A stretch of 64,000 nucleotides of DNA from Hyalangium minutum (GCF_000737315.1 NZ_JMCB01000019.1:173596-237595), one strand, 5' to 3'; numbered from the stretch's first letter, positions 5,363-28,300 are shown. The notes: generated from the sequence alone by a model not told the origin. Program-made: numbers and translations.

Positions 5363-5700
5363 TTCATCCGCTCCAGGCCCCCGGCGGATGCCTCCGTAGG
5401 AGCGTCGATCTTCGGGCTGCAACGCACCGCTCGGGAGGCGCAGCGCAGTCCTTGCCAACGACAAGTGAGCCAGAAGGAGTCAAAATGATGCAGAAGAATC
5501 TGCGGGCTCGGTCGTCTTTCGCGGTAAGTGAGGAGCGCCGCAGCGAGGCCACGCCCTTGACGCGTTGCGGTGTCATGGAGCAGGCCACCCGAATTCCACT
5601 CGCCTGCGTCTGCGGCGCTCCTGGCAGGGCCGCCATGACGGCAGAGGAACATGCGACGCTGGCCACCATCGGCGCGAACCTGGAGATGCGGGGGCGGGAT

Positions 5701-9080: not shown

Positions 9081-9114
9081 GCGGGTGCGGAGCCGCCTCG
9101 GCAGAGTGCGACGC

Positions 9115-10519: not shown

Positions 10520-12205
10520 ATGTCCTTCGACTTCCACGCCATTCTCCAGCACGTCGAGGCAGCTGCCCCCACCGAGGGCCTCCCCGAGTGGCTCCCGCGA
10601 AGCTGGAGCGATCCGGAGGGCTTCGCCTCGGCGCTGGCCCCGGCGTACACGGGCCGCGGCGCGGCCTTCAAGAGCCGCACGGGCCAGCACCACGACTTCT
10701 TCCACGATCTCATCGTCCGGCACGCCACCACGGATCGCATCGCGCTGCGCACGTATGACCGGACGCGCGGCTGGCAGACGCTGAGCTACCGCCAACTGCA
10801 CGACCAGGCCCTCCGGCGGGCCGCAGCGTGGGAGCATCGAGGCGTCAAACCGGGAGCCCGGGTGTGCCTGATGTTCCACCCTGGCGCCGAGCTGTGGGTG
10901 AGCCTCGCCGCAGCGCTGGGGTTGGGAGCCTGCATCAGCCTGCTGCCGCCGGTGGGACAGCGCTTCGTCGCGCGCCGGCTCGCCGCGCTCGCACCGGGCC
11001 ACGTGGCCGCCGAGCCACACCAGGCGCCGCTGCTGGGCGCCTACGCCAAGTGCCTGCTGCCCACGACGGGGCCATCGGCGCCAGCGCTCGCCTCATACTC
11101 GTACAAGCCGGACGAGCCGGTGGGCCTGTTCTTCTCGCCTCTGGCGGCGCTCCCCTCCACCCCGGTGCCGCTCAAGGCGGGAGAGGCTTGGCTCGGCGCA
11201 CTGGTGGATGGGCTGCTCACCTTCGCGCTGGCGCCGGGAGATCACCTGACCGCTCCGGGCTTCCACCCACTCCAGCACCTGCCCGCGCTCATCTTCGCCA
11301 CGCTGCTGCGCGGAGCTACATTCCTCCACCTCGAGCCCTCGGATGTAGAGGAGCGCCCCAGCCTCCTGACCGAATACCCGGTGCGGGCGCTCGGGGTCAC
11401 CCCGGCCTTGAGGGACGTGCTGCTGCGGAGCCGGACGCCGCTGAAGAACGTAGGAGGCTGGTTCCGCAACCCCGAGGCCCCGCTCGACTGGCAGGCGTGG
11501 CGCGCGTGGGTGAAGCAGTGCGGGCTGGAGTCCGTGCCCTGCTCCAACGTGCTGGTGGATGCGGCCGCGGGAGGCGCAGTGCTTTGCTCGCTCCGGCGCG
11601 TGGGAGATGTCCACGCCGAGGCCGCTCCGGCGCCGGGCCGCCGCTGGGCCCTGGAGGCGCTCGACCGGAGTGGACAGCGGGCCGCAGGAGACTCGGGCGT
11701 CTTCACCCTTCTGCCCTCGGAGGGGCGGCCGCCAGGGCACGTCATCCTCTCCCGCCTCCGCCAGAAGTACCTCTACGGCGGGACGTGGGATGCGCGGCAC
11801 GAGGGCCGGGTCCCGCTCATGGCCGAGGTGACGGAGGCGCTGGCGGCCATGTCTCCGCCCTGTTCCACCTCGCTGCTCACCGTGCCGACGGGAGGCCTCT
11901 CGGGCGAGCTCCGCTCGATGTTGCTCGTCTTCACGGGCGCGCCCTCGCAGGGCGCGGCGCTGTCCCTGGCGGAGGTGCGCCGGTACCTCGAGCTGCAGCT
12001 TGGCGCCGAGCACGTACCAGAGCGGTTCGAGGTCTTCCCGCTCTACCCGAGGTTGAAAGAGGGCCAGGTGGACGCGGCGTGGTGCCACGCGCAGTACCTG
12101 ACGGGCGCGCTCTACCACAAAGCCCAGGAGCCGCTGTTCCAGACGCTCACGGAGCTGCGGGCCCAGGTGCGGCACGCCGCGCTCCCTTCCGAAACGAGGA
12201 GATGA
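10520..12205 (+). CDS. Degenerate AMP-binding (ANL-fold) protein in the T6SS operon
   Basis: LSYRQLHDQALRRAAAW...GVKPGARVCLM N-terminal pattern; the P-loop position reads FFSPLAALPSTP; the A10 motif reads LYPRLKEGQVD (Lys replaced by Gln). Confidence 0.7.
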   Translation: MSFDFHAILQHVEAAAPTEGLPEWLPRSWSDPEGFASALAPAYTGRGAAFKSRTGQHHDFFHDLIVRHATTDRIALRTYDRTRGWQTLSYRQLHDQALRRAAAWEHRGVKPGARVCLMFHPGAELWVSLAAALGLGACISLLPPVGQRFVARRLAALAPGHVAAEPHQAPLLGAYAKCLLPTTGPSAPALASYSYKPDEPVGLFFSPLAALPSTPVPLKAGEAWLGALVDGLLTFALAPGDHLTAPGFHPLQHLPALIFATLLRGATFLHLEPSDVEERPSLLTEYPVRALGVTPALRDVLLRSRTPLKNVGGWFRNPEAPLDWQAWRAWVKQCGLESVPCSNVLVDAAAGGAVLCSLRRVGDVHAEAAPAPGRRWALEALDRSGQRAAGDSGVFTLLPSEGRPPGHVILSRLRQKYLYGGTWDARHEGRVPLMAEVTEALAAMSPPCSTSLLTVPTGGLSGELRSMLLVFTGAPSQGAALSLAEVRRYLELQLGAEHVPERFEVFPLYPRLKEGQVDAAWCHAQYLTGALYHKAQEPLFQTLTELRAQVRHAALPSETRR

Positions 12206-12208
12206 CCG

Positions 12209-12595
12209 ATGGGAATCCAAGTCGTCACGGGAGCCATGCTCCAGTGCAGCTTCGGCGTGGCGCCCTCCAGCCTGGTGGTGCTCCCGGCGAACAAGGTGAT
12301 GGCGACCACTCCGGCCGCCAACATCATGGACAACAAGCCGCTGGTGAACATCCCCCCGTTCGGGATGTGCCAATCCATGGCAAATCCGATGGTGGCCGCA
12401 GCCACGGCGGCGGCGCTGGGCGTGCTCACCCCAATGCCTTGCATTCCGGCGACGGCGGCGCCGTGGGCACCCGGCTGTCCCAAGGTGATGATCGGCAACA
12501 TGCCGGCCTTGGACAGCTCCTCCAAGTGCATGTGCAACTGGGGCGGCGTCATCCAGATCGTCAACCCCGGCCAGACGGCGGTGCAAGATGGCTGA
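12209..12595 (+). CDS. DUF4280 PAAR-like spike-tip protein (IglG-like)
   Basis: GAMLQCSFG, NIPPFGMC, PCIP, W-x-PG, KCMCNWGGVIQI: the DUF4280 Cys pattern. Confidence 0.9.
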   Translation: MGIQVVTGAMLQCSFGVAPSSLVVLPANKVMATTPAANIMDNKPLVNIPPFGMCQSMANPMVAAATAAALGVLTPMPCIPATAAPWAPGCPKVMIGNMPALDSSSKCMCNWGGVIQIVNPGQTAVQDG

Positions 12596-13715
12596 GTCTC
12601 TGCATTCGCTCGCGGCGCTGGAGCGCGCGTTGAGCACGGCCTCTGCTCCTGTCTCCTCGCTGACGCCCGAGCAGGTGGAGGCGCGGGTGGATCGGGTCAC
12701 CGCGCTGATGGCCCGGAGCGCCTACGACGAGGCGGCGCGCGCCTCCGAGGCATTGCTCACCGAGGGACTCCGGGATGTGCGGCTGGTAACGCCGTGCCTC
12801 TTCGGTGCCTTCCTGGAGCGCGGCCCGCGCGCTCTGCCCGGGATCTTCTCCGCCCTGCACCGAGTCCTCACGCGGAGCTGGGAGCAGCTTGGCCCCAGCG
12901 ACAAGAAGCCAGTCGTGGCGGACAGTGGGCTGCTCTGGCTGTTCAAGTCGCTTCACAAGCACCTGGAGTTCCATGGGCGGGCCCAGGACGACGTGTGGCG
13001 CAAGTGGTGCGAAAGCTGCGAGGCGTCTGAGATTCAGGAAGCGCTCCAGCGCGCAAGTGAGCTGTTCGAGGCTCTTGAACAGCTCCTGCCCAAAGGAGGG
13101 GGTACTACCCGGCTGCTCCAGTTGACCGGCTGGCTGACGGAGAACCGCGAGCTCTTCTCGGAGACTCCAGCCCGCCCTGCGCGGGCCCAGGCTGAGGAGT
13201 CCCCCAGGGCGGCGGCCATCTCTGAGCGCTGGGAGGAGGCGCCTTCCGCCGATCCAGAGGAGGAGGCGGAAGATGAGGAGGACGAAGAGCAAGAAGAAGC
13301 CACCGAGGAGCAGGCACTTGAAGCCGAGGATGACTCCGAAGAGGAGATCCTCTTCGAGCCCGTGGCGGTCCCGCAGCCCCGCTTGCCGCCACAGCCTGGT
13401 CTGGAGCCCTCTCCGGCGCTCGAGCAACTGCTGCACAAGCTGACCGCATTCGATCAGCTCGTAGAGCGTCAGGACTTCTCGCGGGCCAGCATGATTGCCA
13501 CGGACGTGCTCCATGTGATCGACCACTTCGATCCGCTCGTCTATCTGCCCTCGCTCTTCACACGCTTCCTCTCGGGCCTGAGCGCGCATGCGGGGAGCAT
13601 CGAGCCACGGATGCAGAGCCCTCGCTCCTTGGGTGAGCGTGCCCTCGAGCGGCTCTACCGGACGGACTTGCAGGCGTTCTTGAACTCCTCCTCCGGTGTG
13701 GAGGACGCGCCATGA
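12588..13715 (+). CDS. IglI-family / TssA(ImpA_N)-like T6SS protein
   Basis: RDVRLVTPCLFGAFLERGPRALPGIFSALHRVLTRSWEQLGP resembles the ImpA N-terminal KDLR...G...L...W..L.P pattern; acidic linker; overlaps both neighbours. Confidence 0.65.
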   Translation: MAESLHSLAALERALSTASAPVSSLTPEQVEARVDRVTALMARSAYDEAARASEALLTEGLRDVRLVTPCLFGAFLERGPRALPGIFSALHRVLTRSWEQLGPSDKKPVVADSGLLWLFKSLHKHLEFHGRAQDDVWRKWCESCEASEIQEALQRASELFEALEQLLPKGGGTTRLLQLTGWLTENRELFSETPARPARAQAEESPRAAAISERWEEAPSADPEEEAEDEEDEEQEEATEEQALEAEDDSEEEILFEPVAVPQPRLPPQPGLEPSPALEQLLHKLTAFDQLVERQDFSRASMIATDVLHVIDHFDPLVYLPSLFTRFLSGLSAHAGSIEPRMQSPRSLGERALERLYRTDLQAFLNSSSGVEDAP

Positions 13716-14632
13716 GAGACCTCTCATTCGAGCAACGGCTGCGCGAGCGCATCCGCGGGTTCGACATGCCCGCTCTGCTGGTGCTGCTGAAACACAAAAA
13801 GTATGCGCTGGAGCTGATCGAATACCGGAGCCACCGCACGCTCGTGCATCAGAGCCACCTGGTGCATGACATCCAGTTCAGCGACGAGTCACCCAGCCGG
13901 GTGATCATCACGGTGAACATCGGGCTGCTCAGCGTGCAGTCTCCTCTGCCCACCTTCCTGCATCAGACAATGAATCAGCTGGATCCGCTGGAGAGCGAGC
14001 GGATGGAACGTTTCCTGGGCTATTTCGACCACGAACTGCTCCGGGCGCGCTTCGCGGGGCTCTACCCTGAACGAAGCGCCTCGCTGCTTCCCGGCTGGGA
14101 GGAAGCGGCGCAGAACCGATTGAGCTTATTGAGCCTCACCAGCCCGAGCACGCTGCACTGGCTGTTCGCCCAAGTCTTCCCAGAGGCCGAAGTGTCCGTA
14201 CGGCGTGAGGTGCGCACTCAGGCCGTGCCAGCCCACGGCTCGCAGCTCGGTGTCACGGCATTGGGAGACTCCACGGCGTTGGGGGGCTTCGCCTCTGTGC
14301 CCACGGGCGGCATGGAAGTAACGGTCTTCTTCAATGAAAGTCATTGCGGAATAGGAACACCGTGGGCCATGGAAGCTCCGCTGCGCCTTTCCCATAGGCT
14401 CCTCCCTGTCTTCTCCCAGAGCTCGGCGCCACTCACCGCGTGGATGGTGTTGCGCGATCCGAGCGGTCCAGCCCGCCTCCAGCCAGACAACTACCTCGGC
14501 TATGTCCCGCTGGCGGGCACTGAGAACCTTCATCAACGTCTCTTGCTCTTCCGCGGCAACCTCGCGCATCCAACCCCAGACACGTCTAGCGGCCAGATAC
14601 CCAGCGTTTCGACCGAGCAGAGAGTGGCTTGA
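13712..14632 (+). CDS. tssG: TssG-like baseplate protein (IglJ position)
   Basis: ITVNIGLLSVQSPLP...FLGYFDHELL resembles the TssG V.FLGL.G..SPLP...DFLD.F.HRL pattern. Confidence 0.65.
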   Translation: MRDLSFEQRLRERIRGFDMPALLVLLKHKKYALELIEYRSHRTLVHQSHLVHDIQFSDESPSRVIITVNIGLLSVQSPLPTFLHQTMNQLDPLESERMERFLGYFDHELLRARFAGLYPERSASLLPGWEEAAQNRLSLLSLTSPSTLHWLFAQVFPEAEVSVRREVRTQAVPAHGSQLGVTALGDSTALGGFASVPTGGMEVTVFFNESHCGIGTPWAMEAPLRLSHRLLPVFSQSSAPLTAWMVLRDPSGPARLQPDNYLGYVPLAGTENLHQRLLLFRGNLAHPTPDTSSGQIPSVSTEQRVA

Positions 14633-14667
14633 CCCACTCCTGCCAAGTACCTCCAAGGGAGCCAACC

Positions 14668-15858
14668 ATGTCAAAAGTTCAATTCATCGGCTATCAACTC
14701 CAAACAGCGGCCAATGGAACATCGAACGCACTCAGCAAGCGCGTGAACTACCCAGGCCTCGCGAATGGCCGCGATGACATCAGGGCTCGATGCATGGTGC
14801 TGGCCGACGCCATCATCGCAGCGCGAATGCATCCAGCCATCGACACCAGCGCCAAGAAGATCTTTGCCGCACCAGAGTTCTTCTTCCGTGGCGGTTCGGC
14901 CGGCGTCTACAACATCGAAGATGTCTCGTACATCAACGAGTTCCTGGACACGTTCCTCGCCAAGCCGCACTACAAGAAGTGGACGTTCGTGCTTGGCACT
15001 GCACTCGCTGCGATGCCCGAGGAGAACTCCAAGACCGAGATTCTCAATATCTCCCTCGTGCGCAATGGCGGCGTGCGCGTCACCGGCAAAACGGATGCCA
15101 GCGAGCAGGACGCTCTCGCGCATGGCAGTAGCGACTCGCGGCTGATTTACAAGGAATACGTCTCCGCCATCGATTTCCTCGGGCCGAACTTCGGGCGAGG
15201 CGATTTGTTCCATGACGATCCGGCCCAGGGTGGACGCGCACATATCCGTGGCAAGCCCAAGACCCTCATGCCTACGTCGGGAGCGCGACCCACGGGCAAA
15301 TACATGCGCCACCGGAACAGTGCGAACGAGCACGGCCGGACTCGCACCTGGAAGCCCTCGGGGCACCTGCAGGGTGAGATCTATGGAGAGTTTCTACACG
15401 GACGAATCAAGACGCTCCCGGAGCTGAATCGGCGGCTCCGCCCCACCACGTACAAGACCAGCGAGCGCAGCAGGACGGGGCTCGGCGGCGGTATCGACTT
15501 CCAGATGAGTGGAATGCGCTTCGCGCTCGAGATCTGTCTGGATCACGCTCAGCAGCGCGCCGCAGAAGCTGTCCATTCGGACGTGGACGTGCACCTCGTC
15601 ACATCCTGCGGAATGACTCCCCGGTATTCGTGCTGCAAGAGCAGAGGCTTCCTGTTCCATGTCGACGGCATCACCGACGATGCAGCAAGGGTCTGGGCCT
15701 ACAAACGGACAAGCAGCGGCCACCTTCAGATGCGGCCGCAGACATCGTTGGACATGACCCACCCTTCACGCTGGCTCAACTCGACGACCGACGCGACGAA
15801 TCTCTTCGAGGCGGGCAAGGGCTCCGTCGTCATCTTCCGCGCCGACGCTCTTCCCTGA
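14668..15858 (+). CDS. Nitrilase / carbon-nitrogen hydrolase-fold protein, candidate effector
   Basis: KIFAAPEFFF (Glu), LIYKEYVS (Lys), FALEICLDHA (Cys); start after AGGGAG; visibly AT-richer codons. Confidence 0.6.
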   Translation: MSKVQFIGYQLQTAANGTSNALSKRVNYPGLANGRDDIRARCMVLADAIIAARMHPAIDTSAKKIFAAPEFFFRGGSAGVYNIEDVSYINEFLDTFLAKPHYKKWTFVLGTALAAMPEENSKTEILNISLVRNGGVRVTGKTDASEQDALAHGSSDSRLIYKEYVSAIDFLGPNFGRGDLFHDDPAQGGRAHIRGKPKTLMPTSGARPTGKYMRHRNSANEHGRTRTWKPSGHLQGEIYGEFLHGRIKTLPELNRRLRPTTYKTSERSRTGLGGGIDFQMSGMRFALEICLDHAQQRAAEAVHSDVDVHLVTSCGMTPRYSCCKSRGFLFHVDGITDDAARVWAYKRTSSGHLQMRPQTSLDMTHPSRWLNSTTDATNLFEAGKGSVVIFRADALP

Positions 15859-16006: not shown

Positions 16007-16540
16007 TTGCCCATCCAAGACAAACTTCCCACGTCCCGCATCACCCTCACCTACCGCACCACCATCAACGGGCAGGAGGAAGAGGTTGACCTCCCCTTCC
16101 GCATGCTCGTCCTCGGCGACCTCTCCCTCGGCTCGTCCAAGGACCGCAAGGTGGATCTCGACGAGCGCAAGCTGCGCTCCGTCAAGCCCGGCGGTCTGGA
16201 TGACCTGATGAAGGACATGGACATGTCCATCGAGTTCCAGGTCCCCGACAAGACCACCTCCAGCGGCGAGGGCACGATGAACGTGAAGCTGCCCATCGAG
16301 CGCATGAAGTCCTTCCATCCGGACGAGTTCGTCCAGCACGTGCCCAAGCTCAAGGCCCTGCTCATCCTCCGCAAGCTGCTGCTCGAGATGCAGGCCGACA
16401 TCGACAACCGCAAGGAGCTCTGGCGCACGCTCTCCGAGCTCTACGCCCACCCGGAGCAGATCCAGCAGCTGCTCGAGAGCGACGCGCTCAAGGGCTTCGA
16501 GAACCTCCGCCTGCCCCCCGGCGAAGCGGCCGGCAACTGA
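16007..16540 (+). CDS. tssB: T6SS contractile sheath small subunit TssB (VipA/IglA)
   Basis: SRITLTYRT...DLPFRMLVLGDLS...KSFHPDEFVQHVPKLKALL. Confidence 0.95.
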   Translation: MPIQDKLPTSRITLTYRTTINGQEEEVDLPFRMLVLGDLSLGSSKDRKVDLDERKLRSVKPGGLDDLMKDMDMSIEFQVPDKTTSSGEGTMNVKLPIERMKSFHPDEFVQHVPKLKALLILRKLLLEMQADIDNRKELWRTLSELYAHPEQIQQLLESDALKGFENLRLPPGEAAGN

Positions 16541-16582: not shown

Positions 16583-18076
16583 ATGGCTGAGAAAAACTAC
16601 CTGCAGGAACTCTTCAAGAGCCGCGGCCTGGGCACCCCGCCCACCACCGCCGAGCCCATGATTGGCACCGGCCTCGTCCCCACCTCGCGCCAGGAGAGCG
16701 AGATCTCCACCGACAGCCGGTTCATGTCCGCGCTCGCCGCGCTGCTCCACAACGTCAAGCCGCTCCAGGACGAGGACAGCCGGCCGCGCTTCGACAAGGG
16801 CCAGGTGATGGACGCCGTGGCCCGCCTGGATGAGCTCATCGAGGCCCAGGTCAACGAGATCCTCCACCACGAGACCTTCCAGCAGGCGGAGTCCACGTGG
16901 CGCGGTGTGGAGGACCTCGTCAATCACACCAACTTCCAGGCCAACATCAACATCGATCTGCTCGACGTGTCCAAGCAGGAGCTGGCTCAGGACTTCGAGA
17001 AGAACGCGAGCAGCATCTTCTCCAGCTCGCTCTTCAACAAGGTCTACACCCACGAGTACGACCAGTACGGCGGCCGGCCGTTCGGCACGATGATCGGGCT
17101 GTACGAGTTCACCGCGTCCCGGCCGGATCTGCAGTGGCTCGAGCGCATGAGCTGGGTGGCCAACGCGGCGCACTGCCCCTTCGTGGCCTCGGCCAGCTAC
17201 AAGTTCTTCGACTGCGAGAGCGTGGAGCAGCTCGAGTCGCTCAAGAGCCTGGACGGAGTGCTCAACCACCCGCGCTACGGCAAGTGGGCGGAGCTGCGCG
17301 AGAGCGAGTCGGCCGCGTACATCAGCCTGGCGCTCCCGCGCTACGTGGTGCGGCTGCCGTACAACCCCGTCACCAACCCGTGCGAGGTGCTCAACTTCAC
17401 CGAGGAGGCCCACGGCGACTCCAAGAAGTACCTCTGGGGCAATGCCGCCATCCTCTTCGGCCGCAACCTGGCCAGCGCCTTCGAGGTGTCCGGCTGGTGC
17501 CAGTCCATCCGCGGCCCCAAGGGCGGCGGCCGCATCCAGGGCCTGCCGGTGGACACCTTCACCCTGCGCGGTCAGCAGGAGATGCAGATGCCGGTGGAGA
17601 TGTGCATCCCGGACTTCCGCGAGTACGAGTTCGTCCGCCACGGCTTCATGCCGCTCGTGTACCGGAAGAACGAGGCCGAGGCGACGTTCTTCAGCACCCC
17701 GTCCATCAAGCGCGCCAAGCGCTACAAGGATCCGAAGGACTCGGAGAACGCCCAGCTCGTCACCAACATGGCGTACACGTTCTCCATCACCCGGCTCGCG
17801 CACTACATCAAGAGCATCATGCGCGACAACATCGGCAGCTCCGCCGATGAGGTCTACGTCCACCAGCAGATCAGCAACTGGCTGATGGACTACGTGACCG
17901 CGGTGAGCAACCCGGATGACCTCACGCTGCGGCGCTTCCCGTTCAAGTCCGCTCAGGTGCTCGTGGCCAAGCGCCCGGGTGAGATCGGCTGGTACGACTG
18001 CAAGGTGTCGGTCCTGCCGCACATCCAGTTCGAGGGCCTCAACGTCGAGCTGCAGCTCGAGTCGCGGCTCGGCTAG
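16583..18076 (+). CDS. tssC: T6SS contractile sheath large subunit TssC (VipB/IglB)
   Basis: QVNEILHHETFQQAESTWRG, EYDQYGGRPFG, AAHCPF, LALPRY, YLWGNAA, GWCQSIRGPKGGG, VLPHIQFEG. Confidence 0.97.
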   Translation: MAEKNYLQELFKSRGLGTPPTTAEPMIGTGLVPTSRQESEISTDSRFMSALAALLHNVKPLQDEDSRPRFDKGQVMDAVARLDELIEAQVNEILHHETFQQAESTWRGVEDLVNHTNFQANINIDLLDVSKQELAQDFEKNASSIFSSSLFNKVYTHEYDQYGGRPFGTMIGLYEFTASRPDLQWLERMSWVANAAHCPFVASASYKFFDCESVEQLESLKSLDGVLNHPRYGKWAELRESESAAYISLALPRYVVRLPYNPVTNPCEVLNFTEEAHGDSKKYLWGNAAILFGRNLASAFEVSGWCQSIRGPKGGGRIQGLPVDTFTLRGQQEMQMPVEMCIPDFREYEFVRHGFMPLVYRKNEAEATFFSTPSIKRAKRYKDPKDSENAQLVTNMAYTFSITRLAHYIKSIMRDNIGSSADEVYVHQQISNWLMDYVTAVSNPDDLTLRRFPFKSAQVLVAKRPGEIGWYDCKVSVLPHIQFEGLNVELQLESRLG

Positions 18077-18118: not shown

Positions 18119-18691
18119 ATGCCTCGCTTCAGCCGCAGTCTGGATGTGTACCAGGGCTTCAACTTCAAGAAGGACAAGCAGAGCAACGTCGGCGTGCTCC
18201 TGACCATGAAGGTCGGGGGCAAGGAGCTGAAGGCCGATCTGGAGACCATCAAGGATCCGGAGCAGCCCACCAAGGACATCAAGGCCGTTGGGGTGCTCAA
18301 CCACTACCTGTGGGAGACGGGCTCCACGGACTCCATGTACTTCGCCGGGCAGATCTCCACCGAGAACCGGCAGACGCTGGCCATGCTCATCCTCAATGAC
18401 TTGACCAACATCGAGGTGGAGTTCAGCTACGCCATCTACCAGTTCGACCCGCTGGAGAAGAAGTACTTCAAGTCCAGCTTCCACAAGTCCGCGCTCAAGG
18501 GCCTGGTGGAGAAGAGCGGGGACGAGCTGAAGGTGATGGTCGACGATGATCCGGCGGAGGAGGTCACCTCGCCGCAGAACTTCACCTTCCAGATCGGCAT
18601 CAAGCCGCAGCCCCAGGAGCAGCAGGTGACCCTGGCCAGCGCGCCGCAGATGAAGGTCGAGAAGAAGTGGGGCTTCAAGAGCGGCAAGTAG
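18119..18691 (+). CDS. Putative inner-tube protein, IglC-like (not canonical Hcp)
   Basis: Directly after tssC; beta-rich 190 aa; lacks typical Hcp motifs; TMKVGGKEL and FTFQIGIKP resemble recalled IglC segments. Confidence 0.6.
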   Translation: MPRFSRSLDVYQGFNFKKDKQSNVGVLLTMKVGGKELKADLETIKDPEQPTKDIKAVGVLNHYLWETGSTDSMYFAGQISTENRQTLAMLILNDLTNIEVEFSYAIYQFDPLEKKYFKSSFHKSALKGLVEKSGDELKVMVDDDPAEEVTSPQNFTFQIGIKPQPQEQQVTLASAPQMKVEKKWGFKSGK

Positions 18692-18730: not shown

Positions 18731-19987
18731 ATGGATCCCCACAAGATCGCCCGCGTCCGCTGGCAGGCGGGGCAGATGCTCCTGCCCGAACACTTCCGCG
18801 CCCAGGACGAAGTCCTCTCCGCCGAGACGCTGCTCTCAGCGGAGCTCACCGGCCTGCCTCCCGTGGGCATCGGTGGGCTCGAACTCAACCGGGCCCAGCT
18901 GGCCGAGGGCACCTTCTCCCTCGGCTCGCTGACAGCCCTCATGCCGGGTGGCCAGCTTGTGCAGGTGCCCGGCAACGCCACCGTAGCGCCCATCTCGCTG
19001 GAGGAGACGGGCCGCTCGCGGCTCACGCTCTACCTCCACCTGATGCACGAGACCCGCGGCGCCGAGGGAATTCCCCTGTACGCGAAGGATCCTCCCGCGC
19101 TCCACCGGGCGCTCCACATCCTCCAGCTCTCCGCCGAGCAGGCCCTGGATGGGGCGATCAGCTCGCTGCCGCTGGCCGAGCTCCAGAAGGATGAGCTGGG
19201 GCGGTGGGAGCTGTCGCGGGAGCAGCTTCCTCCCCTGCTGCGCGCCAGCCCCCACCCGTTCCTGGATGGGCTGTTCTCCTGCCTGGACGAGCTGCTGGAG
19301 CAGGCGCACGGGCAGCTGCGCACGGCCATCCGTGACCACTACGTGCGCGGCGACCGGCTCTCCAATGCCCGGCGTGCCCTGTGCGAGGTGCGCCGCGCCC
19401 AGGGCCTGCGCGCGGACATGCGCCATGGCCTCCACCCCTCCACCTACCACCTCTTCTCGATGCTCCGCGAGCTGTACCTGCAGATGTGCTGCTACCTGGA
19501 GTGCGAGCCGGCGGAGGAGCTGCCCGCCTACGAGCACGACGCACCGGGCCCGGGCCTGTGGCAGTGGATGAAGCTGCTCGCGGGTGGCCTCCGCCCGAGC
19601 CAGGCAAACCGCCGCACGTACCAGCCCCTCGACTGCCGCGAGGGACGCTTCGTGATCTCGCCCTTGCCCCAGGAGGAGCCCGCGCCGAACGACTTCTACC
19701 TGCTGATCCGGCGTCACGAGCGCGACAAGCCTCGCGCTTTGGAGGGCGTGAAGATCGCCAGCCCCCTGCGCCTGCCCCTCGTGCGGCGACAGGCCCTCAA
19801 GGGCCTCACCTTCCGCCACGTGCCGTACCCCTCGTTCCCGCACGCGTTCGACTCGGACATCGACTGGTACCAGCTCACGACCGAGGGCGAGGAGTGGCAG
19901 GCCGTGCTGCGCGAGGGCGGGCTCTCCCTCCCCGTGACGCCGCCGCTGGAGGGAGCCCAGGTGTTCCTCTTCTGGAGGAGGACGTGA
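18731..19987 (+). CDS. tssK: TssK-like baseplate connector (IglD-like)
   Basis: RVRWQAGQMLLPEHFRAQD matches the TssK W.EG..L.PQHFQQQD pattern; position after the tube gene as iglD. Confidence 0.8.
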   Translation: MDPHKIARVRWQAGQMLLPEHFRAQDEVLSAETLLSAELTGLPPVGIGGLELNRAQLAEGTFSLGSLTALMPGGQLVQVPGNATVAPISLEETGRSRLTLYLHLMHETRGAEGIPLYAKDPPALHRALHILQLSAEQALDGAISSLPLAELQKDELGRWELSREQLPPLLRASPHPFLDGLFSCLDELLEQAHGQLRTAIRDHYVRGDRLSNARRALCEVRRAQGLRADMRHGLHPSTYHLFSMLRELYLQMCCYLECEPAEELPAYEHDAPGPGLWQWMKLLAGGLRPSQANRRTYQPLDCREGRFVISPLPQEEPAPNDFYLLIRRHERDKPRALEGVKIASPLRLPLVRRQALKGLTFRHVPYPSFPHAFDSDIDWYQLTTEGEEWQAVLREGGLSLPVTPPLEGAQVFLFWRRT

Positions 19988-19988
19988 C

Positions 19989-20369
19989 ATGCCACGCCGG
20001 CCCTTTCTCGACAGGTTCTCCAGCCGCGGCGCCTCTGCGCGGGAGCCGCTGGGCCCCGTTCTGCGCAACCTCGAGGCGGTGCTCAACACCCGCGAGGGCT
20101 ACGGCTTCTTCCAGCAGGGCTTCGGGCTCGGGGACTACACCGGGGACCGCGGCGGCAAGGAGCTGGTGCCGTTCCTCACGGAGGAGCTGCAGCGCCAGGT
20201 GGCGCAGTACGAGCCCCGGCTGCGCGACGTGGAGGTGACGCTGCGTGGCCAGGACGCCGCCCTGTGCCTGCACTTCGAGGTGACGGGCCTGCTGAGCGGC
20301 GAGGCCCTGCGGCTGGGGCTGATCTTCGACACCGTGAGCAGCCGGGTGCGGCTGGAGAGGAAGGACTGA
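19989..20369 (+). CDS. tssE: TssE / gp25-like baseplate protein
   Basis: VLRNLEAVLNTR...FGLGD...VAQYEPRLRDVEV. Confidence 0.85.
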   Translation: MPRRPFLDRFSSRGASAREPLGPVLRNLEAVLNTREGYGFFQQGFGLGDYTGDRGGKELVPFLTEELQRQVAQYEPRLRDVEVTLRGQDAALCLHFEVTGLLSGEALRLGLIFDTVSSRVRLERKD

Positions 20370-20370
20370 C

Positions 20371-22014
20371 ATGCCAGACACATTCGAGGACAGGCTGGCC
20401 GTCTCGCTGACGCTCACCGTGGAGGGACAGGCACACGCCATCCCTCCCGGCAACATCCAGTCCTTTCATCTGGAGCTGCATGGCTGGGGACTGGAGGGGC
20501 GGGTGGAGTTCATCCTCACCGACAACAAGAGCCTGGGCGGCAAGCAGAAGGACACCCTGCTGCCGGACTTCCTCAAGCCCGGCCTCGCCGAGGTGGCGCT
20601 CGAGGTGAGCGCCGTCCAGACGGACGCCAAGCCCAAGCAGAAGCCCACGCCGCTGAAGCTCCAGGCGCTCGTGTCCTCCAAGGCGCTCGTGGAGCTGCCG
20701 GGTGGCTCCGGCCCGAAGGCCGCTCTGCTGCACCGCCGCTACACCGTGCACTTCCTGGACGCGGCCCAGCTGCTGTGGCGCCAGCACCACCCGTGCGCGC
20801 TCTACACGCAGAAGACCTTCAAGGATGTCCTCGACGAGCACAAGGGCGAGAAGATCCAGCTGACCTATGACTGGGACGCCGTGCTGGGCGTCTCGCAGCC
20901 GCTGCTCTTCCTTGGGCTGGAGCGGGAGCTGGGAGCGAGCTTCTACGACTTGCTCCAGTGGTACCTGGAGCGCCACCAGGGCGTGCTGGCGTATGACGCG
21001 GAGAAGGGCAGCTACTCCCTGCTCGGCGCGAAGTCGGAGAAGGGCAAGCCGCTAGAGCTGGATCCCGGAGAGGTGGCCTCGCTGGAGGTGCACCTGCCCG
21101 AGGTCATCCGCCACGGGGCCACCATCCTCAACGCCGTGGCCGAGGACCCCAAGCGCGAGGAGCTCACCCATGCCCAGGCCGTGAAGGGGCTTCGCCAGGA
21201 CGTACTGCTGTGCACGCCGCTGGCCGACTCGGTGCAGGCCCGGGTGGATCTGGAGAAGGCCCGCCTCGAGGCGCGGGGCATGGAGCTGGAGCTGGAGTGG
21301 CGGCGCATGCCGGCCCAGGCCTTCGCGCCGGGGACGCTGGTGAAGCTCTCGCCGGAGAAGGGCTGGAACCCGGCCAGCGTGGCCGCGAAGGACACCTTCC
21401 GGATCCGCTCCATGAGCCTCCACGGGCAGGCGCTCGTGGCCGACCCCGACGCGGAGCGCGAGGCTTCGAGTGCGGGCTTCCACTTCCAGATGAGCACTCG
21501 GCTGGAGCGCCAGGACGAGCGCTGGATCGACCGCCCCGCGTACACCCCTCCGCGCTTTCCTCGGTACGTCGAAGGCTTGCTGGTGAGCGAGGTGGGCGAG
21601 GAGAAGCACGAGACATGGCAGGTCTACAGCGAGGAGAAGACCTCGCTGGACAGCTACCGCATCCAGCTGCCGATCTTCGAGGACCAGGTGGTGAGCGCCC
21701 CCTTCAATCCCAACTTGCTGCCGGGCCACTTCTACTTCCCCGCCTACAAGAAAGAGCGAGTGCTGGTGGCGCTGGACTTCCAGCGGGCTTGGGTCAAGCG
21801 CTTCCTGGACTGGCGGGCCAGCGCGCGGATGCCGCAGGAGAGCCAGGGCGTGCAGCTGCTGATGGGCAAGACGCCCACCAACGGCGCCACCCTCCAGCAG
21901 TCCTATGAAGACGACAAGCCCGTGCTCTTGCTGCAGCGCACCCACGAGAAGGACCTGGGGGTGATCCGCCTGCGCGAGGGCTCGATGCGAATCCAGATCA
22001 AGGAAGAGGACTAG
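20371..22014 (+). CDS. VgrG N-terminal hub protein (gp27-like plus OB-fold; PdpA-like), no beta-helix
   Basis: LYTQKTFKDVL...SFYDLLQWYLERHQGVL and GHFYFPAYKKERVLVAL resemble VgrG hub and OB-fold motifs; ends at 547 aa. Confidence 0.65.
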   Translation: MPDTFEDRLAVSLTLTVEGQAHAIPPGNIQSFHLELHGWGLEGRVEFILTDNKSLGGKQKDTLLPDFLKPGLAEVALEVSAVQTDAKPKQKPTPLKLQALVSSKALVELPGGSGPKAALLHRRYTVHFLDAAQLLWRQHHPCALYTQKTFKDVLDEHKGEKIQLTYDWDAVLGVSQPLLFLGLERELGASFYDLLQWYLERHQGVLAYDAEKGSYSLLGAKSEKGKPLELDPGEVASLEVHLPEVIRHGATILNAVAEDPKREELTHAQAVKGLRQDVLLCTPLADSVQARVDLEKARLEARGMELELEWRRMPAQAFAPGTLVKLSPEKGWNPASVAAKDTFRIRSMSLHGQALVADPDAEREASSAGFHFQMSTRLERQDERWIDRPAYTPPRFPRYVEGLLVSEVGEEKHETWQVYSEEKTSLDSYRIQLPIFEDQVVSAPFNPNLLPGHFYFPAYKKERVLVALDFQRAWVKRFLDWRASARMPQESQGVQLLMGKTPTNGATLQQSYEDDKPVLLLQRTHEKDLGVIRLREGSMRIQIKEED

Positions 22015-22026
22015 GAGCGGCACGCC

Positions 22027-22626
22027 ATGGCGAAGCTCATCTGCACCATCGATCTGGACAAGGAGAAGGGCCTCACCGTCACGGTCGAGGATCCCGAGGG
22101 CAAGCTCACCCAGACGGTGATGCTGGATGGCAAGGCCATCACCCTGGAGGTGAAGAGCGACTCGGACACGAGCACCATCGTCCAGAAGGCAGACAGCATC
22201 AGCGTCACCTGCAAGGCCTTCAGCGTGGAGGCCGACACCATCACCTTGAAGTCCAAGAAGGAGTCGGCGTGGACGAGCGACGAGACGCTGGAGCTCAAGA
22301 GCACGAAGGACATGGCGCTCACCTCCAGCGCGAAGCTGACGCAGAAGGCCTCGAAGGACGCGGTCCTCTCCTCCAACGCCAACCTGGAGCTGAAGGCCAC
22401 GCAGAAGCTCACGCTCGAGGGAATGGAGGGCCAGGTGTCCGCCACCGGAGGGCCGCTCAAGCTGGAGGGAGTGAAGCTGGAGCTGAAGGGCAAATCCCAG
22501 GCGGAGCTGGGAGCCCCGCTCATCAAGGTGGCGGCACAGGGACAGCTGGGACTCGAGTCCTCGGGGATCGCGGAGCTGAAGGGCTCGATGACCAGCGTAA
22601 GCGGCTCGCTCGTGAAGCTGGGGTGA
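22027..22626 (+). CDS. vgrG: Stand-alone short VgrG/gp5-type beta-helix spike
   Basis: Ser/Thr/Lys-rich short beta-strand repeats ending ELKGSMTSVSGSLVKLG. Confidence 0.75.
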   Translation: MAKLICTIDLDKEKGLTVTVEDPEGKLTQTVMLDGKAITLEVKSDSDTSTIVQKADSISVTCKAFSVEADTITLKSKKESAWTSDETLELKSTKDMALTSSAKLTQKASKDAVLSSNANLELKATQKLTLEGMEGQVSATGGPLKLEGVKLELKGKSQAELGAPLIKVAAQGQLGLESSGIAELKGSMTSVSGSLVKLG

Positions 22627-22683: not shown

Positions 22684-22760
22684 GCCCCTTCGGTGAAGAA
22701 CGCTCAGAGTACGCGGCATCCGGGACGCCCACCGCCCCGGGTGAACGGATGGGATTTGCC

Positions 22761-24407
22761 ATGGCTGAAACGAATCAGCTCTATCAGGACTACCTCGCGG
22801 AGCTGGCGGCGCTCGAGCGCTTCCGCCAGGGCTTCCGCCACACCTACCCCGGCGTTCCCCTGGAGCAGGAGGACCCGGATGTGCGCCGGCTGGTGGAGGC
22901 CCTGGCCTTCTTCTCCGTGCAGACGCGGCACGCCACGCTGCGCAACCTCCGCTCCACGTGGCTGCGATTGTTCTCCAGCTTCTTCCACTGCCTGCTGGAG
23001 CCACTGCCTGCCACGGGCCTGGTGCAGGCGGCTCCCACGGAGAAGATGGTGGAGGCGGCAGTGCTGCCCCGAGGCACCGAGCTGAGCCTGCGGCCCGTGG
23101 GCGGCGAGGCGGGCTCCTTCCGCCTCGAGCGGGACCTGCGGGTGCTGCCCATCTTCCTGGAGGAGACGCAGGTGCTGAGCCTGGCGGATGGCGGCCACCG
23201 CCTCATCCTCCGCTTCGCCGCGGCCTTCCCTCGGAGGGATCCGGTGGAGGTGCTCAGCCTCCACGTGCGCCACCTGGAGGAGTACGGCAGTTCCCTGGCG
23301 GTGTACCACGCGCTCCGCAAGCATCTGCAGCAGGTGCGCGTGGTGTATGACGCGAAGGCGGATGAGCGCTCCGCGGGGCAGCTATGCGAGCACTCCTTCG
23401 GGCCGACGCCGTTCGCGCCCGATGACGCGAGCCTCTACGCCAACCCCCTGCAGCGCGCGCGCTCCTTCTTCCAGCTCCCGGAGCAGGGGCTCTTCCTGCA
23501 CATCCGGGTGGCGCCCACGCGGCAGGCCTGGAACCGCTTCAGCCTGTGCCTGGACTTGAAGAAGGAGTGGTCCGTGGGCCGCTCGCGCCACCCGGACTTC
23601 CTGCGCCCCTTCGTCGCGCCCGTCGTCAACCTCAAGGCCGCGCCCGCACAACCCATCACCCTGGATGGCACCCGCACCGAGCACCCGCTGTTGGGGCTGC
23701 GCAACGGCCATGGCTTCCGTCTGCACTCGGTGACGGGCGTCTACGTGCAGGGCTCCCGAGGCCGCGAGCCCATGCGTCCCGCCCACGTGCCTGGGCCCGG
23801 CCCCTCCTACGAACTGGACGAGCAGCTGGCCGCGGATGGCAACCCCTTGCACCAGCTGCTGGTGCAGATGCCGGAGGCCTTCCTCGAGCCGCGCAAGCTG
23901 CACGTGGACGCGCTCTGGTACCAGCCCCACTTCGCCACCGAGGCGATGGGCCGCCTCGAGGCCTCGACGCCCAGCCTCCACGTGGAGGGACTGCGGTGGC
24001 GCGTGCTGGGGGACGTGCAGCCGCCTCGCGAGAGCCCCCTGCGCCAGGACGTGCCCGCGCTGACGCGGCTGCTCTCGTGGAAGGTCCGCCCCACCCTGGA
24101 GCGGGACGAGCTGGCCGCCCTCCTGTCCTATCTGGGCACGTTCCAGGAGAGCGCCTTCGGCCCCATCCTCCCGCTGTTGCGCGCGCTGAGGTGCTCCGTG
24201 CTGCCGGATGGCGCGCTGCGCGGCACGGGGCTGCGGCACGTGTACGAGGCGCGGCTCGCGCCCTTCGACGCCAGCCAAGAGGCCCTCGTCGCCTGCTTCC
24301 TCGAGCAGGTGCTGGCCCTGCTGGACGCATGGAACGGCGAGGCCTCCGTGGAGCTGCGGCCCTCGGTGGACGGCGCTGGAGCTTTCAACCCCTGGGGAAC
24401 GCCATGA
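22761..24407 (+). CDS. tssF: TssF-like baseplate protein (IglH-like)
   Basis: YQDYLAELAALERFRQGF...EDPDVRRLVEALAFF; PFVAPVVNL. Confidence 0.85.
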   Translation: MAETNQLYQDYLAELAALERFRQGFRHTYPGVPLEQEDPDVRRLVEALAFFSVQTRHATLRNLRSTWLRLFSSFFHCLLEPLPATGLVQAAPTEKMVEAAVLPRGTELSLRPVGGEAGSFRLERDLRVLPIFLEETQVLSLADGGHRLILRFAAAFPRRDPVEVLSLHVRHLEEYGSSLAVYHALRKHLQQVRVVYDAKADERSAGQLCEHSFGPTPFAPDDASLYANPLQRARSFFQLPEQGLFLHIRVAPTRQAWNRFSLCLDLKKEWSVGRSRHPDFLRPFVAPVVNLKAAPAQPITLDGTRTEHPLLGLRNGHGFRLHSVTGVYVQGSRGREPMRPAHVPGPGPSYELDEQLAADGNPLHQLLVQMPEAFLEPRKLHVDALWYQPHFATEAMGRLEASTPSLHVEGLRWRVLGDVQPPRESPLRQDVPALTRLLSWKVRPTLERDELAALLSYLGTFQESAFGPILPLLRALRCSVLPDGALRGTGLRHVYEARLAPFDASQEALVACFLEQVLALLDAWNGEASVELRPSVDGAGAFNPWGTP

Positions 24408-25045
24408 ACCTGGAACATTGGAAGATCGTCTTCGCGCAGTACCGGCAGACGCGCGCGCTGTTGGACCAATGGCTGCCGGCCGAGACCTCGCGAAGCGAGG
24501 AGCGCACCCAGGTCCTCGTAGGACGCGCGGGGCTGGCGCAGTTGCAGCAGCAGTTACTGGTGGCGCTGGACGGCCTGCGCTCGGGGCTGGGCAGCCACTA
24601 CCGCTCCGAGGAGGTGGACGACGCGCTGCGGCCCTTCATCTATCTGCTAGATGAGCGGGTGCTGCTGCGCCTGGCCGAGGCCGAGCAGTACGACTGGCCC
24701 CCGCTGCAGCGCCACCTCCGCGGCGAGGAGGGCGGTGGAGACCTGTTCTTCGAGCTGGCGGACCAGAAGCTGAACCAGCCAGGAGCCTCGCCGCTGGTGT
24801 TCGAGCTGCTGCACTTCTGCCTCACCGCGGGCTTCGGCGGCCGCTACCTGGGCAACACGGCGAAGCTGCGTGAGTACAAGCAGCGGCTGGGGGCCCGCAT
24901 CGTCACCCCCGAACCCGCGCCTGCCGCGCCTCCCGCAGCCACGAACGCGCGGCCCCTGCTCTACGAGTTCCCCGCCCGCTACTACGCCGGCGCCTGCCTC
25001 TGCTTCCTGGGGCTGCAGGGCCTGCTGTGGTGGCTCTCCAACTGA
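24404..25045 (+). CDS. tssL: DotU/TssL membrane protein
   Basis: PFIYLLDERVL...LQRHLRGEEGGGDLFFE...LHFCLTAGFGGRY; C-terminal TM helix; ATGA overlap with tssF. Confidence 0.9.
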   Translation: MNLEHWKIVFAQYRQTRALLDQWLPAETSRSEERTQVLVGRAGLAQLQQQLLVALDGLRSGLGSHYRSEEVDDALRPFIYLLDERVLLRLAEAEQYDWPPLQRHLRGEEGGGDLFFELADQKLNQPGASPLVFELLHFCLTAGFGGRYLGNTAKLREYKQRLGARIVTPEPAPAAPPAATNARPLLYEFPARYYAGACLCFLGLQGLLWWLSN

Positions 25046-25384: not shown

Positions 25385-28300
25385 ATGGAAAAGCTTCGCG
25401 AACTCGGGTCTCACGTGAGCCCCTACCAGGGCTGGCTGTTCCTCGCGCTGGGCGTGCTGCTCCTGGTGGCCGCCGTGGTGGCGCTCGCGGTGTGGATGCG
25501 CCGGCGGCGGCAGCGGGGCGCCACCTCCCTGGGGGCTCCGCCTCCCATGCCGGCCCAGCGGCTGCGGAAGATCCGCCAGGACTTCCTCAAGGCGCTGCCG
25601 TGGCTGCAGCGCGCCGCCGTGAGAGATCTACCGTGCGCGGTGGTGCTCGGCCCGGCGGGCAGCGGCAAGTCGAAGCTCATCGCCCTGGACGTGGACTGGC
25701 AGCGGCAGTCGCGCCAGTTCCTCCCCAGCCACACGAGCGACTCGCTGCTGAAGCTCTACCTTGGGCCCGACTCGGTGGTGCAGGAATTGTCGGCGCCGCT
25801 GACCGAGGACGACACGCCGCAGGCCCGCCGGTCGCTGCGCAAGCTGTGGAAGGACGCCTTTGGCCAGGGCCAGCATGCGCTCGCGGTCCTCGCGCTGGAC
25901 GTGCGCTGGCTGGCGGAGACCCCGCCCGACGAGGTGCGGCGCACAGCGCAGTTGCTGCGCGGCAAGCTCAACCTGCTGGCCGAGGTACGCAGACTCCCGG
26001 TGGAGACGCGCCTGTGCCTGACGCACATGGACACGCTGGAGGGCTTCGAGGACTTCGCCGAGCTGCTCCGCACCCACCATGTACCGCTCTCCTTCGCGCT
26101 GCCGCCTCGAGGCGAGGAGGGCCAGGTGGCCTCCCTCCTCCAGGCCCAGGAGCAGTACCTGGCGCTGGGGCTGACCTCGCTGCCGGTGGAATCCTTCGAA
26201 CGGCTGGAGCGCTTCTACTCCCAGGGCCACCGCCCCTTCGAGGCCCTGGCCCGCTTCACCACCGCGCTGCTCGAGGGTGGGACGCTGGCCTTCGTTCCCA
26301 AGCTGTCCCGGGTGTACCTCTCCTCGCCGTCGGCCCGCGCCTCGGGCGTGCTCTCCGTGCCCTCCGAGGCGCATGACGCCCAGACGCTGCGTCAGCGCTA
26401 CCTGCGCACGCACCTGAAGCGCGGCGCGATGCTGGCCACGGCCTGCAGCCTGCCCATGCTGGCCGCCTACGCGCACTTCTCCTGGCGGTTGTCGCAGGCC
26501 CAGGAGAATGTGGGGCGCTTCGAGAGCACGGTCCAGCGCATGCGCGACCAGGGCCAGGAGGTGTCTGGCAGCGTGGTGCAGGATCAGGTGCTCGCCGCGC
26601 GCCAGGCCATGGACGTGATGTGGCGGGCCACCGGCTACTGGCCGCTGCTGCCTTACAGCTTCTCCCAGGCCCGCGAGAACCTGACCAAGCGGCTGACCCA
26701 GGGCATCCGCGAGGCCCACCTGCGTCCCGCCCTCGAGCACTGCCAGAAGCAGCCGGACACGTGCCGCCCCGAGCAGGTCGTCTTCCTGCTGGCCGCCCTG
26801 CATGCCTCGAGCAGTGAGCCGCTCGGTCAGTTCGTCCTCTCCAGCCTGCGCAACCGGAGTGCGTGGAGCGTCTCCGGCAAGGAGGCACAGGAGACGGCCT
26901 CCACCACCGAGGCGCCCAACCTCGAGTCCACGCGCTCGTGGCTCACCGCCATCCATCTGGTGGAGTCCCTGGTGGGGCCCTACGTCACCCTCAGCGACAA
27001 GCCCTGGCAGGCCCCCACCACGCCAGAAGCGGACTGGGCGCGCTGGCCCTTCCGCGAGGCCTTCACGCTGGAGGGCCAGCTGGCTCCCTGGCAGGCCCAC
27101 TTCAAGCGGCTGGAGGACTTCCTGCAAGCGCAGGCGGTGGAGCCCTGGGAGCTGGACCGGATGAACAAGGAGCTGGAGGCGCTGCAGGAGGAGCGGCTGC
27201 AGCTCCAGGCGTGGCTGGAGGACAGCGCCATCTTTGCCGCCCTGCCGCGCGCGCTCGACCTGATCAAGGCCTCCGAGGCCCGCGTGGACACCAGCCGCTT
27301 CAAGGGCCTGTCCTCCACGCTCCAGTCCGTGGAGTGGATGAACAAACACCGCGAGGTGCTCGCCTCCCTGCTGCACATGGAGGAGGAGGCCTATACGGGC
27401 CTCAAGGCAGTGCAGAAGATGAGCGTGGCCGAGCTGCTCGTGCGTGGCGGAGTGTGGCAGCCGGGCCCCTCCAGCAAGGGCCCTCTCCAGCTGACCATCA
27501 CCCAGGGCCCCCTCGAGTTCCACCCGGCGGATAACTCGCGCCAGATTCACCGGGCCATCCTCCGCTACTACGAGCGTACGGGCCGCCTGCCCTTCGCCTC
27601 GGCGCGCGGTGAGGGGGAGGGCTCCTCTCCGTCCACCACCAGCCTGCCCGAGGAGCGGCTGAAGTTCGACACCCGCATCCGCCCGCTGGTGGACGAGTTC
27701 ACCCAGTTGCTCAAGAGCGCCGACCTGCCCGCGGAGGAGATCTCCCAGCGCCAGGAGCACGTCCGCCGCCAGGTGGATCTGTTCTCGATCCGGTACCGCC
27801 AGCGGCTCTACCAGCGCGTGAACGCCTACCGCCTCGACGCGCTCACCCCCGCCCTGCTCACCGAGGAGCTGTCGCGCCTCACCCAGCCCTCCTCGGAGCT
27901 GGTGGACATGCTGCGCGACGTGGCCAAGGGAGCCTCCCTCGAGCCGCTCGAGGGCCCCTACTACGAGTCCCTGCGCAACTCGGTGGCCACCTTCAAGCCC
28001 ATCGTGCAGGTGATGAAGCCCGACGAGAGCGGCAACTACGCTCTCCTCAATCCCTACCGGGCCCTGGTGGCGCAGCTGTCGGACGAGCTGCTGGCCGTCT
28101 CCCGCGGGGGAGCCCGGGCCGCATCCACCGCTCCGGCCTCCGGTGGCGAGGGAGGCAGCGCGGCCCGGCTCACGGAGATGCTCACACCCATGGGGCGCAT
28201 TGCCCTCTCGATGATGCTGGAGGCGGACGACTCGTATCTCCGCAAGGTGGATGCATGGCTGGACCAGCAGGGCTTCATCGGCGAGCTGCGTGAGCCCTTC

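Follow-up and report, generated by a model that had tools for sequence, protein, structure and literature searches.

A Candidate Inner-Tube Protein in the IglC Position of a Type VI Secretion Gene Cluster from Hyalangium minutum

A 64,000-nucleotide stretch of the Hyalangium minutum genome (NZ_JMCB01000019.1, 173596-237595; hereafter the window, with positions counted from its first letter) harbors a type VI secretion system (T6SS) gene cluster, which runs on the + strand from ~10.5 kb to ~29.5 kb. The gene examined here, a candidate for the inner-tube subunit at the TssD/IglC position, occupies 18119..18691 on the + strand and encodes a protein of 190 amino acids (aa) between an ATG at 18119 and a TAG ending at 18691. 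The stop codon of tssC lies 42 nt upstream of the gene and tssK begins 39 nt downstream. In the first half of the cluster, the encoded products are, in order, a 561-aa protein, a DUF4280 PAAR-like protein, an IglI-family protein, a weakly assigned TssG, a 409-aa protein, TssB, TssC, and the 190-aa protein; TssK, TssE, a 547-aa protein, a 199-aa VgrG, TssF, TssL/DotU, TssM, and an IglE-type lipoprotein make up the rest.

At ~68% G+C, the window holds long overlapping spurious open reading frames (ORFs) in plenty. The frame at 18119..18691 is a genuine coding gene and not a chance ORF, because its codon composition resembles that of tssB and tssC, its homologues are conserved over their full length, and its start is conserved. 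The G+C content at third codon positions (GC3) is 0.95, among the highest values in the cluster, and that at second positions (GC2) is 0.31; the corresponding GC3 values are 0.94 for tssB, 0.96 for tssC, and 0.95 for the TssE gene. A GC3 equal to that of the sheath genes fits a protein required at high copy number. A word-indexed protein search returned 238 proteins at E<=0.01, the closest of which (92-54% identical, ~190 aa each) come from Archangium, Cystobacter, Myxococcus, Corallococcus, Hyalangium, Stigmatella, and Pyxidicoccus; where these homologues carry a name, it is 'hypothetical protein' throughout. The start residue, M1, is kept in 77 of 78 diverse relatives. Coordinates, codon composition, and homologues thus confirm the 190-aa gene that a preliminary description, made from the DNA sequence, had placed after tssC.

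The 190-aa protein belongs to a large family for which neither Pfam nor NCBIfam holds a curated model. A family profile built from 33 homologues and searched against 1.84 billion representative proteins, clustered at 50% identity, finds 727 clusters at E<=1e-3, of which 515 reach E<=1e-10. The window protein itself matches no Pfam or NCBIfam model at E<=1, and six diverse family members yield no meaningful match in NCBIfam. Neither the Hcp family (PF05638) nor the IglC family (PF11550) appears among the top 25 Pfam families tallied for 78 diverse relatives, and none of those 25 occurs in more than two members. The lack of an Hcp signature reported earlier therefore holds both for the protein, which has no PF05638 match, and for the families listed for its relatives. 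The most conserved stretch of the family is an N-terminal motif, QGFNFxKDxQ, which reads QGFNFKKDKQ in the window protein. The narrow distribution presumed beforehand for IglC homologues applies to IglC proper, whose 18 clusters all belong to Francisella or Pseudofrancisella, but not to the family of the 190-aa protein, whose 727 clusters extend over several phyla.

Related loci were collected from one-genome-per-species contigs using a degenerate DNA pattern for QGFNF-x-KD-x-Q from which the myxobacterial Lys codon was excluded. This search yielded 82 loci, 76 of which encode a family member and 6 of which are chance matches. Carriers of the family include Desulfobacterota (Syntrophus, Desulfobacter, Desulfoluna, Desulfobotulus, and Syntrophobacter), Gammaproteobacteria (Pseudoalteromonas, Zooshikella, Methylobacter, Colwellia, Kangiella, Aliikangiella, Marinomonas, Shewanella, and Cellvibrio), and Myxococcota, together with single contigs of metagenome-assembled genomes (MAGs) that bear the tentative labels Zixibacteria, Planctomycetota, and Lentisphaerales. 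The arrangement tssC-X-tssK on one strand, with X denoting the family gene, recurs in 58 of the 76 family loci, and tssC adjoins the family gene in 9 more, most of which end at the locus edge. On the Planctomycetota-labelled contig (L016), a second tssC lies ~5 kb downstream of the family gene and tssK is not adjacent; two complete clusters of this type (L052 and L064) come from a single Desulfobacterales MAG.

Seven orphan copies of the family gene lack T6SS neighbors (L008, L031, L035, L040, L054, L075, and L082), and orphan copies occur alongside a full cluster in the same genome (L013/L040, on one chromosome, L031/L057, and L008/L078). Canonical hcp likewise occurs as orphan copies away from T6SS genes, a trait that it shares with the family of the 190-aa protein. 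The neighbors of orphan copies, scanned for effector domains, include one secreted Exo_endo_phos protein (L075) and one 1358-aa Dyp-peroxidase/PFL-like fusion (L035), both encoded downstream; these settle nothing.

The cluster was then set against the Francisella pathogenicity island (FPI), represented here by locus L083, in which iglA-iglB-iglC-iglD follow one another and iglJ, iglI, dotU, iglH, iglG, iglF, vgrG, iglE, and pdpB lie on the opposite strand. The window block tssB-tssC-X-tssK reproduces the order iglA-iglB-iglC-iglD, which bears out the position first proposed for the tube gene: the 190-aa gene lies between tssC and tssK as iglC lies between iglB and iglD. Profiles of the clade to which the window cluster belongs connect the flanking genes to this block, all of them, like the other cluster genes described below, on the + strand. 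The sheath small subunit TssB (16007..16540; PF05591 2.4e-39, TIGR03358 145 bits) finds its counterpart IglA at E = 6e-37 (5e-30 with the window TssB alone), the sheath large subunit TssC (16583..18076; TIGR03355 487 bits) finds IglB at 5e-163, and the baseplate subunit TssK (18731..19987; TIGR03353 326 bits) finds IglD at 8e-20. The closest solved structure to the window TssC is also IglB (3j9o_B, 354 bits), with VipB at 347 bits.

The same holds for much of the remaining machinery. Clade profiles match TssF (22749..24407; PF05947 3e-26) to IglH at 2.8e-6; TssL/DotU (24404..25045; PF09850 7e-20; start placed at the first ATG, overlapping the stop of tssF) to DotU at 2e-23; and TssM (25385..29062; TIGR03348 73 bits, below cut-off; Walker A motif GPAGSGKS at residues 89-96) to the C-terminal part of PdpB at 1.7e-11. 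They also match the IglE-type outer-membrane lipoprotein, which would serve in the TssJ role (29059..29520; PF22361 IglE_N 4.8e-33, 114 bits; NF041245 1.9e-10), to IglE at 8e-5, and the short VgrG (22027..22626; NF041249 T6SS_TssI_Fran 3e-7, below cut-off; DUF2345 2e-4), which at 199 aa is of Francisella-like size, to the Francisella VgrG at 5e-10. As single sequences, the DUF4280 PAAR-like spike tip (12209..12595; PF14107 5.5e-38, 130 bits), an IglG counterpart without the N-terminal extension, matches IglG at 1.9e-14, and the IglI-family protein (12588..13715; NF041244 1e-77, 262 bits against a cut-off of 100) matches IglI at 1.1e-5. The assignment of TssG (13712..14632; PF06996 1.5e-5, 24.9 bits against a cut-off of 24.6) is weak, as is its top FPI match, IglJ, at E 0.1-0.2. 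IglE, IglI, the DUF4280 tip, and a truncated VgrG are hallmarks of the FPI (PMC5924787, PMC5014421).

Once these partners are assigned, IglC (209 aa) is the sole short protein of L083 left without one, and its gene sits in the same position as that of the 190-aa protein. The 190-aa protein is taken as the IglC counterpart because of this position and by elimination, and not because of a sequence match. Searches for any other tube gene returned nothing: no Hcp or ClpV match was found among 28 window ORFs scanned against Pfam and NCBIfam, and hidden Markov models (HMMs) built from Hcp1 and from IglC, whose query sequences were verified against PDB chains 1y12_A and 2qwu_A, found nothing among all window ORFs or in the 82 related loci. 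Each scanned ORF of the cluster carries some other assignment or none at all.

The fold of the 190-aa protein was predicted with AlphaFold from two alignments, a shallow one of 33 sequences (model 1; predicted local distance difference test score, pLDDT, 80.5) and a deeper one of 78 sequences (model 2; pLDDT 96.1, predicted template-modelling score, pTM, 0.89). Both models contain ~11-14 strands and one main helix at residues 81-92, in agreement with the beta-rich character noted beforehand. Model 2 also displays a short 5-residue helix at residues 10-14 and a long hairpin at residues 41-56, and its first long strand runs from residue 24. The sole significant PDB match of model 1 is IglC (2QWU; E 1.2e-5, probability 1.0, template-modelling (TM) scores 0.64/0.60), over 201 columns at 12% identity; its weaker matches are tube-like chains from pyocin, T5, and Hcp (Hcp at E 0.22). 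The best PDB matches of model 2, T5 tail-tip tube-like chains, are weak (E 0.02), and its best small-protein match in Foldseek is Hcp1 (1Y12_A; E 0.1, probability 0.82, TM 0.41/0.47, 7.4 A root-mean-square deviation). Against a viral library the best E of model 2 is 4e-3, and the few named matches, likewise weak, are mostly phage tail-tube or baseplate proteins. Antibody Fab and other unrelated chains also stand in the PDB match lists of the models. The secondary-structure layout of the modelled 190-aa protein, with strands, one helix, and a long hairpin, fits the tail-tube type of Hcp1, and a fold of this type is likely for the 190-aa protein.

Profile comparisons with hhalign aligned the family to IglC, or to an IglC alignment, over 28-90 colinear columns at E 0.02-0.07 and a probability of <=2%, which is not significant; within this alignment, both the single helix and the long strand that comes first fall in register. 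The family and Hcp1, or an Hcp1 alignment, share 11-16 columns (E 0.24-0.34, not significant), and IglC and Hcp1 share 14 columns (E 0.16, not significant). Since IglC and Hcp1 are equally undetectable to one another by this method, hhalign cannot decide kinship. In these non-significant registers, the beginning of the first Hcp-like strand falls near residue 6 in Hcp1, residue 26 in the family, and residue 37 in IglC, which would give the family, like IglC, an N-terminal extension not present in Hcp; the crystal structure of IglC is described as having an N-terminal extension of 32 residues (PMC5924787). The sole hhalign pairing with Hcp1 places the family YQGFNFKKDKQ (residues 11-21 of the 190-aa protein) opposite Hcp1 KYGWNIRQNVQ (residues 151-161) at E 0.24. 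It is probably a chance pairing; a genuine one would suggest that a strand had moved from the C-terminus to the N-terminus by swapping.

The preliminary description had named two segments of the 190-aa protein as resembling IglC. The first, LLTMKVGGKEL, does stand opposite IglC FIDSLTIAGEKL in three hhalign runs, in alignments that are not significant (E 0.02-0.07). The second, FTFQIGIKP, was aligned to IglC by no tool, and BLASTP instead paired IglC AFSISIEP with window YFKSSFHK. PDB sequence matches obtained with the protein and with two family profiles (a ribosome biogenesis protein, RalGPS1, and nanobody frameworks) were rejected as chance.

The history of the sheath was approached through neighbor-joining trees of TssC, using alignments of 455-462 columns that included nine T6SSi TssCs. 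TssC of the window clade shares 41% identity with IglB and 36% with the nine T6SSi sequences; between IglB and the latter, identity is 32%. In the unrooted tree, the T6SSi sample splits off in 200 of 200 bootstraps, a result that cannot demonstrate sisterhood of the other two groups because it means only that the T6SSi sample is monophyletic; all that the tree conveys is monophyly of each group. Rooting with the T6SSiii TssC of Capnocytophaga (17-18% identity, saturated) places the window clade with Francisella in 163 of 300 bootstraps, T6SSi with Francisella in 78 of 300, and Francisella at the base in 48 of 300; support in the rooted tree is weak.

From these observations, we consider it probable, at about 0.72, that the 190-aa protein, a member of a large uncurated family, is the inner-tube subunit of this system and the positional counterpart of IglC, and that the family supplies the tube in a widespread lineage of T6SS with accessory genes in common with the FPI. 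The data establish that the gene is genuine, how large its family is, that its synteny is conserved, that the cluster resembles the FPI in gene content, and that no Hcp can be recognised; tube function, ring assembly, secretion, and common descent with IglC are what we infer. By analogy with Hcp, whose hexameric rings stack into a tube, and with IglC, the 190-aa protein would stack as rings inside the TssB/TssC sheath. The tube would sit on the baseplate and on the spike formed by the short VgrG and the PAAR-like DUF4280 protein, capped in the manner proposed for IglC, VgrG, and IglG in Francisella, and would be expelled when the TssBC sheath contracts.

The case for kinship with IglC is made by where the gene lies and by what the system contains; neither sequence nor a robust structural match backs it. 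The homology to IglC first suggested for this gene is accordingly supported in part, by position, by cluster content, and by one of the two models, and finds no counterpart in profile matches, whether with PF11550, with our own IglC HMM, or with hhalign. Several results weigh against the assignment. The family profile does not find IglC in L083, and no sequence method (Pfam, NCBIfam, phmmer and hmmsearch against the PDB, or hhalign) ties the 190-aa protein to IglC or to Hcp. The structural match to IglC varies with the model: model 2, the more confident of the two, has no PDB match at E<=0.001 and fails to retrieve 2QWU among the top 50 in Foldseek. TM-scores to Hcp1 and to phage tube proteins are low, at 0.3-0.47. 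The cluster also has traits foreign to Francisella, namely a gp25-like TssE (19989..20369; PF04965 1e-11; TIGR03357 50 bits, slightly below cut-off), a TssK that scores as canonical (326 bits to TIGR03353), and a Walker A motif in TssM, a motif that PdpB, the Francisella counterpart of TssM, is reported to lack (PMC5014421). Finally, the grouping of the window clade with Francisella in 163 of 300 rooted bootstraps is suggestive only.

The strongest competing explanation accepts the 190-aa protein as a tube subunit and regards it as a highly divergent branch of Hcp without a special tie to IglC, the Francisella-like accessory genes then reflecting shared ancestry or the exchange of those parts. 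The canonical TssK, the TssE, and the Walker A motif in TssM all agree with this account, as do the preference of model 2 for Hcp1 (1Y12) over IglC, which lies outside its top 50, and the rooted sister support of only 54%. The order tssB-tssC-tube is, moreover, frequent in T6SSi, where Hcp follows tssC in, for example, the Ralstonia and Leisingera plasmid loci. A descent from Hcp is harder to reconcile with the absence of PF05638 from the window protein and from the families listed for its 78 relatives, and with hhalign, which aligns 16 columns with the Hcp1 profile (E 0.34) against 90 colinear columns with IglC (E 0.07). Model 1 scores strongly on IglC and reaches Hcp only at E 0.22. By the hhalign registers, an N-terminal extension would be common to the family and IglC, both of which have 98 residues past the helix against ~87 in Hcp1, with helix positions in IglC and Hcp1 read by eye from sequence; in its accessory genes, and in having the tube gene next to tssK, the cluster matches the Francisella island. 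On balance, we regard a special-tie-free Hcp ancestry as unlikely.

It is still less probable, and in our estimate very much so, that the 190-aa protein is no tube at all and acts instead as an accessory protein, a chaperone, or a secreted substrate, with the tube gene elsewhere. The structural matches of model 2 are all weak (best E 0.02 in the PDB and 4e-3 in the viral library), and the window covers only 64 kb of the genome. A contractile system requires a tube, however, and neither the cluster nor the 64 kb contains another candidate. The position is conserved in 58 of 76 loci across phyla, the size of 190 aa and the layout of strands, helix, and hairpin suit tube proteins, and the codon bias equals that of the sheath genes. 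The named structural matches, listed together with unrelated chains, include tail-tube, baseplate-hub, and Hcp proteins. Lastly, a chance ORF or annotation artefact of a high-GC genome, conceivable where long spurious frames abound, is refuted by conservation, given hundreds of full-length homologues with a conserved start, GC3 of 0.95 with GC2 of 0.31, and a pLDDT of 96.

A bolder proposal can be put forward, which we offer tentatively and hold to be possible though somewhat improbable. The 190-aa family, and not IglC, might represent the usual tube in a T6SS lineage that is large and ancient, of which the FPI would be a fast-evolving, host-adapted offshoot. The strongly conserved N-terminal extension bearing QGFNFxKDxQ, absent from Hcp, might then constitute a functional module of the tube that serves ring-ring or tube-sheath contacts or fills the lumen, and assembly and cargo loading could differ from those of Hcp systems.

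Other genes of the cluster and its borders complete the description of the locus. The first gene of the cluster (10520..12205) encodes the 561-aa accessory protein, in which an AMP-binding-like match (PF00501, 5e-13) is limited to residues 70-144. Homologues occur in 25 related loci, usually between iglE and tssB, mostly as near-full-length alignments with some clipped at locus ends; judged from this conservation of sequence, the protein belongs to this type of T6SS as a conserved part that has no name. The 547-aa protein between tssE and vgrG (20371..22014) is likewise conserved, since 23 related loci carry a homologue in the same place, and sequence searches of Pfam, NCBIfam, and the PDB gave no match for it. 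It was considered as a counterpart of IglF and rejected, as it matches neither IglF nor any other FPI protein of L083, a locus without PdpA. The Francisella system is characterised by PdpA, PdpC, PdpD, and IglF, by the lack of a recognisable TssE, and by an IglD far removed from canonical TssK; no match to IglF or PdpD was found in the window cluster by comparison with the L083 proteins.

The 409-aa protein (14629..15858; GC3 0.76) has no assigned function and no relative in the 82 loci, including the closest locus, L030; its gene may be a lineage-specific insertion. GC3 is lowered across 12588-15858 (IglI 0.81, TssG 0.76, and the 409-aa gene 0.76) relative to the other cluster genes (0.84-0.96). 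At the upstream edge of the cluster, a gene at 9085..10512 (+) encodes an OmpA-domain protein (PF00691 1.7e-5, below cut-off), which also shows weak matches to TraB of myxobacterial outer-membrane exchange (54 bits against a cut-off of 700) and to the long form of TssL. This protein may anchor the apparatus to peptidoglycan, its membership in the T6SS being presumed. Directly downstream of iglE, a 1781-aa protein (29658-35003, +) contains 11 repeats of the choice-of-anchor D type together with a MYXO-CTERM sorting signal, in keeping with a myxobacterial origin, and the genes downstream of the cluster are housekeeping genes. An 871-aa protein encoded upstream on the - strand (2849-5464) combines a domain of the choice-of-anchor A type (ice-binding-like, adhesive) with disintegrin-like repeats.

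T6SSii continues to be presented as unique to Francisella in papers up to 2026, and one survey detected 'T6SSii' in Dongshaea. In the limited literature searched, no paper reports IglC-like proteins outside Francisella, nor are such tube proteins or Francisella-type systems described for the phyla considered here; the breadth of the NCBI IglI-family and Pfam IglE_N models implies that curators have already met such clusters. Free-living Myxococcota, Desulfobacterota, and marine or methanotrophic Gammaproteobacteria carry clusters that share IglE, IglI, the PAAR-like tip, and the short VgrG with the FPI. Were the tube assignment correct, automated T6SS detection that depends upon Hcp profiles may under-call or mis-type these systems, and the origin of the Francisella system would become approachable in relatives that are harmless and culturable. 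Ring formation by a tube protein with an N-terminal extension, a question raised for IglC (PMC5924787), could likewise be addressed in a family with deep alignments.

Comparisons with known tube proteins and secretion systems set the 190-aa protein and its cluster in context. Relative to Hcp, the 190-aa protein is ~25-30 residues longer and would possess a conserved N-terminal extension. IglC, whose traits include T6SS-dependent secretion and a requirement for it in secreting VgrG and other substrates, is larger (209-211 aa) and has no counterpart of the QGFNFxKDxQ motif; it and the 190-aa protein are both rich in beta strands and have one helix. The FNI-type clusters of Francisella (W12-1067) resemble the window in their listed layout, in which a 204-214-aa protein follows tssB and tssC. 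In cluster II, an IglD-like gene stands directly after that protein; in cluster I, a 356-aa ORF without assigned function takes this place, and IglE-like and DUF4280 genes are listed (PMC4230796). With the T6SSii of Francisella, the window cluster has in common the IglE lipoprotein, IglI, the DUF4280 PAAR-like tip, a short VgrG, and a cluster without ClpV.

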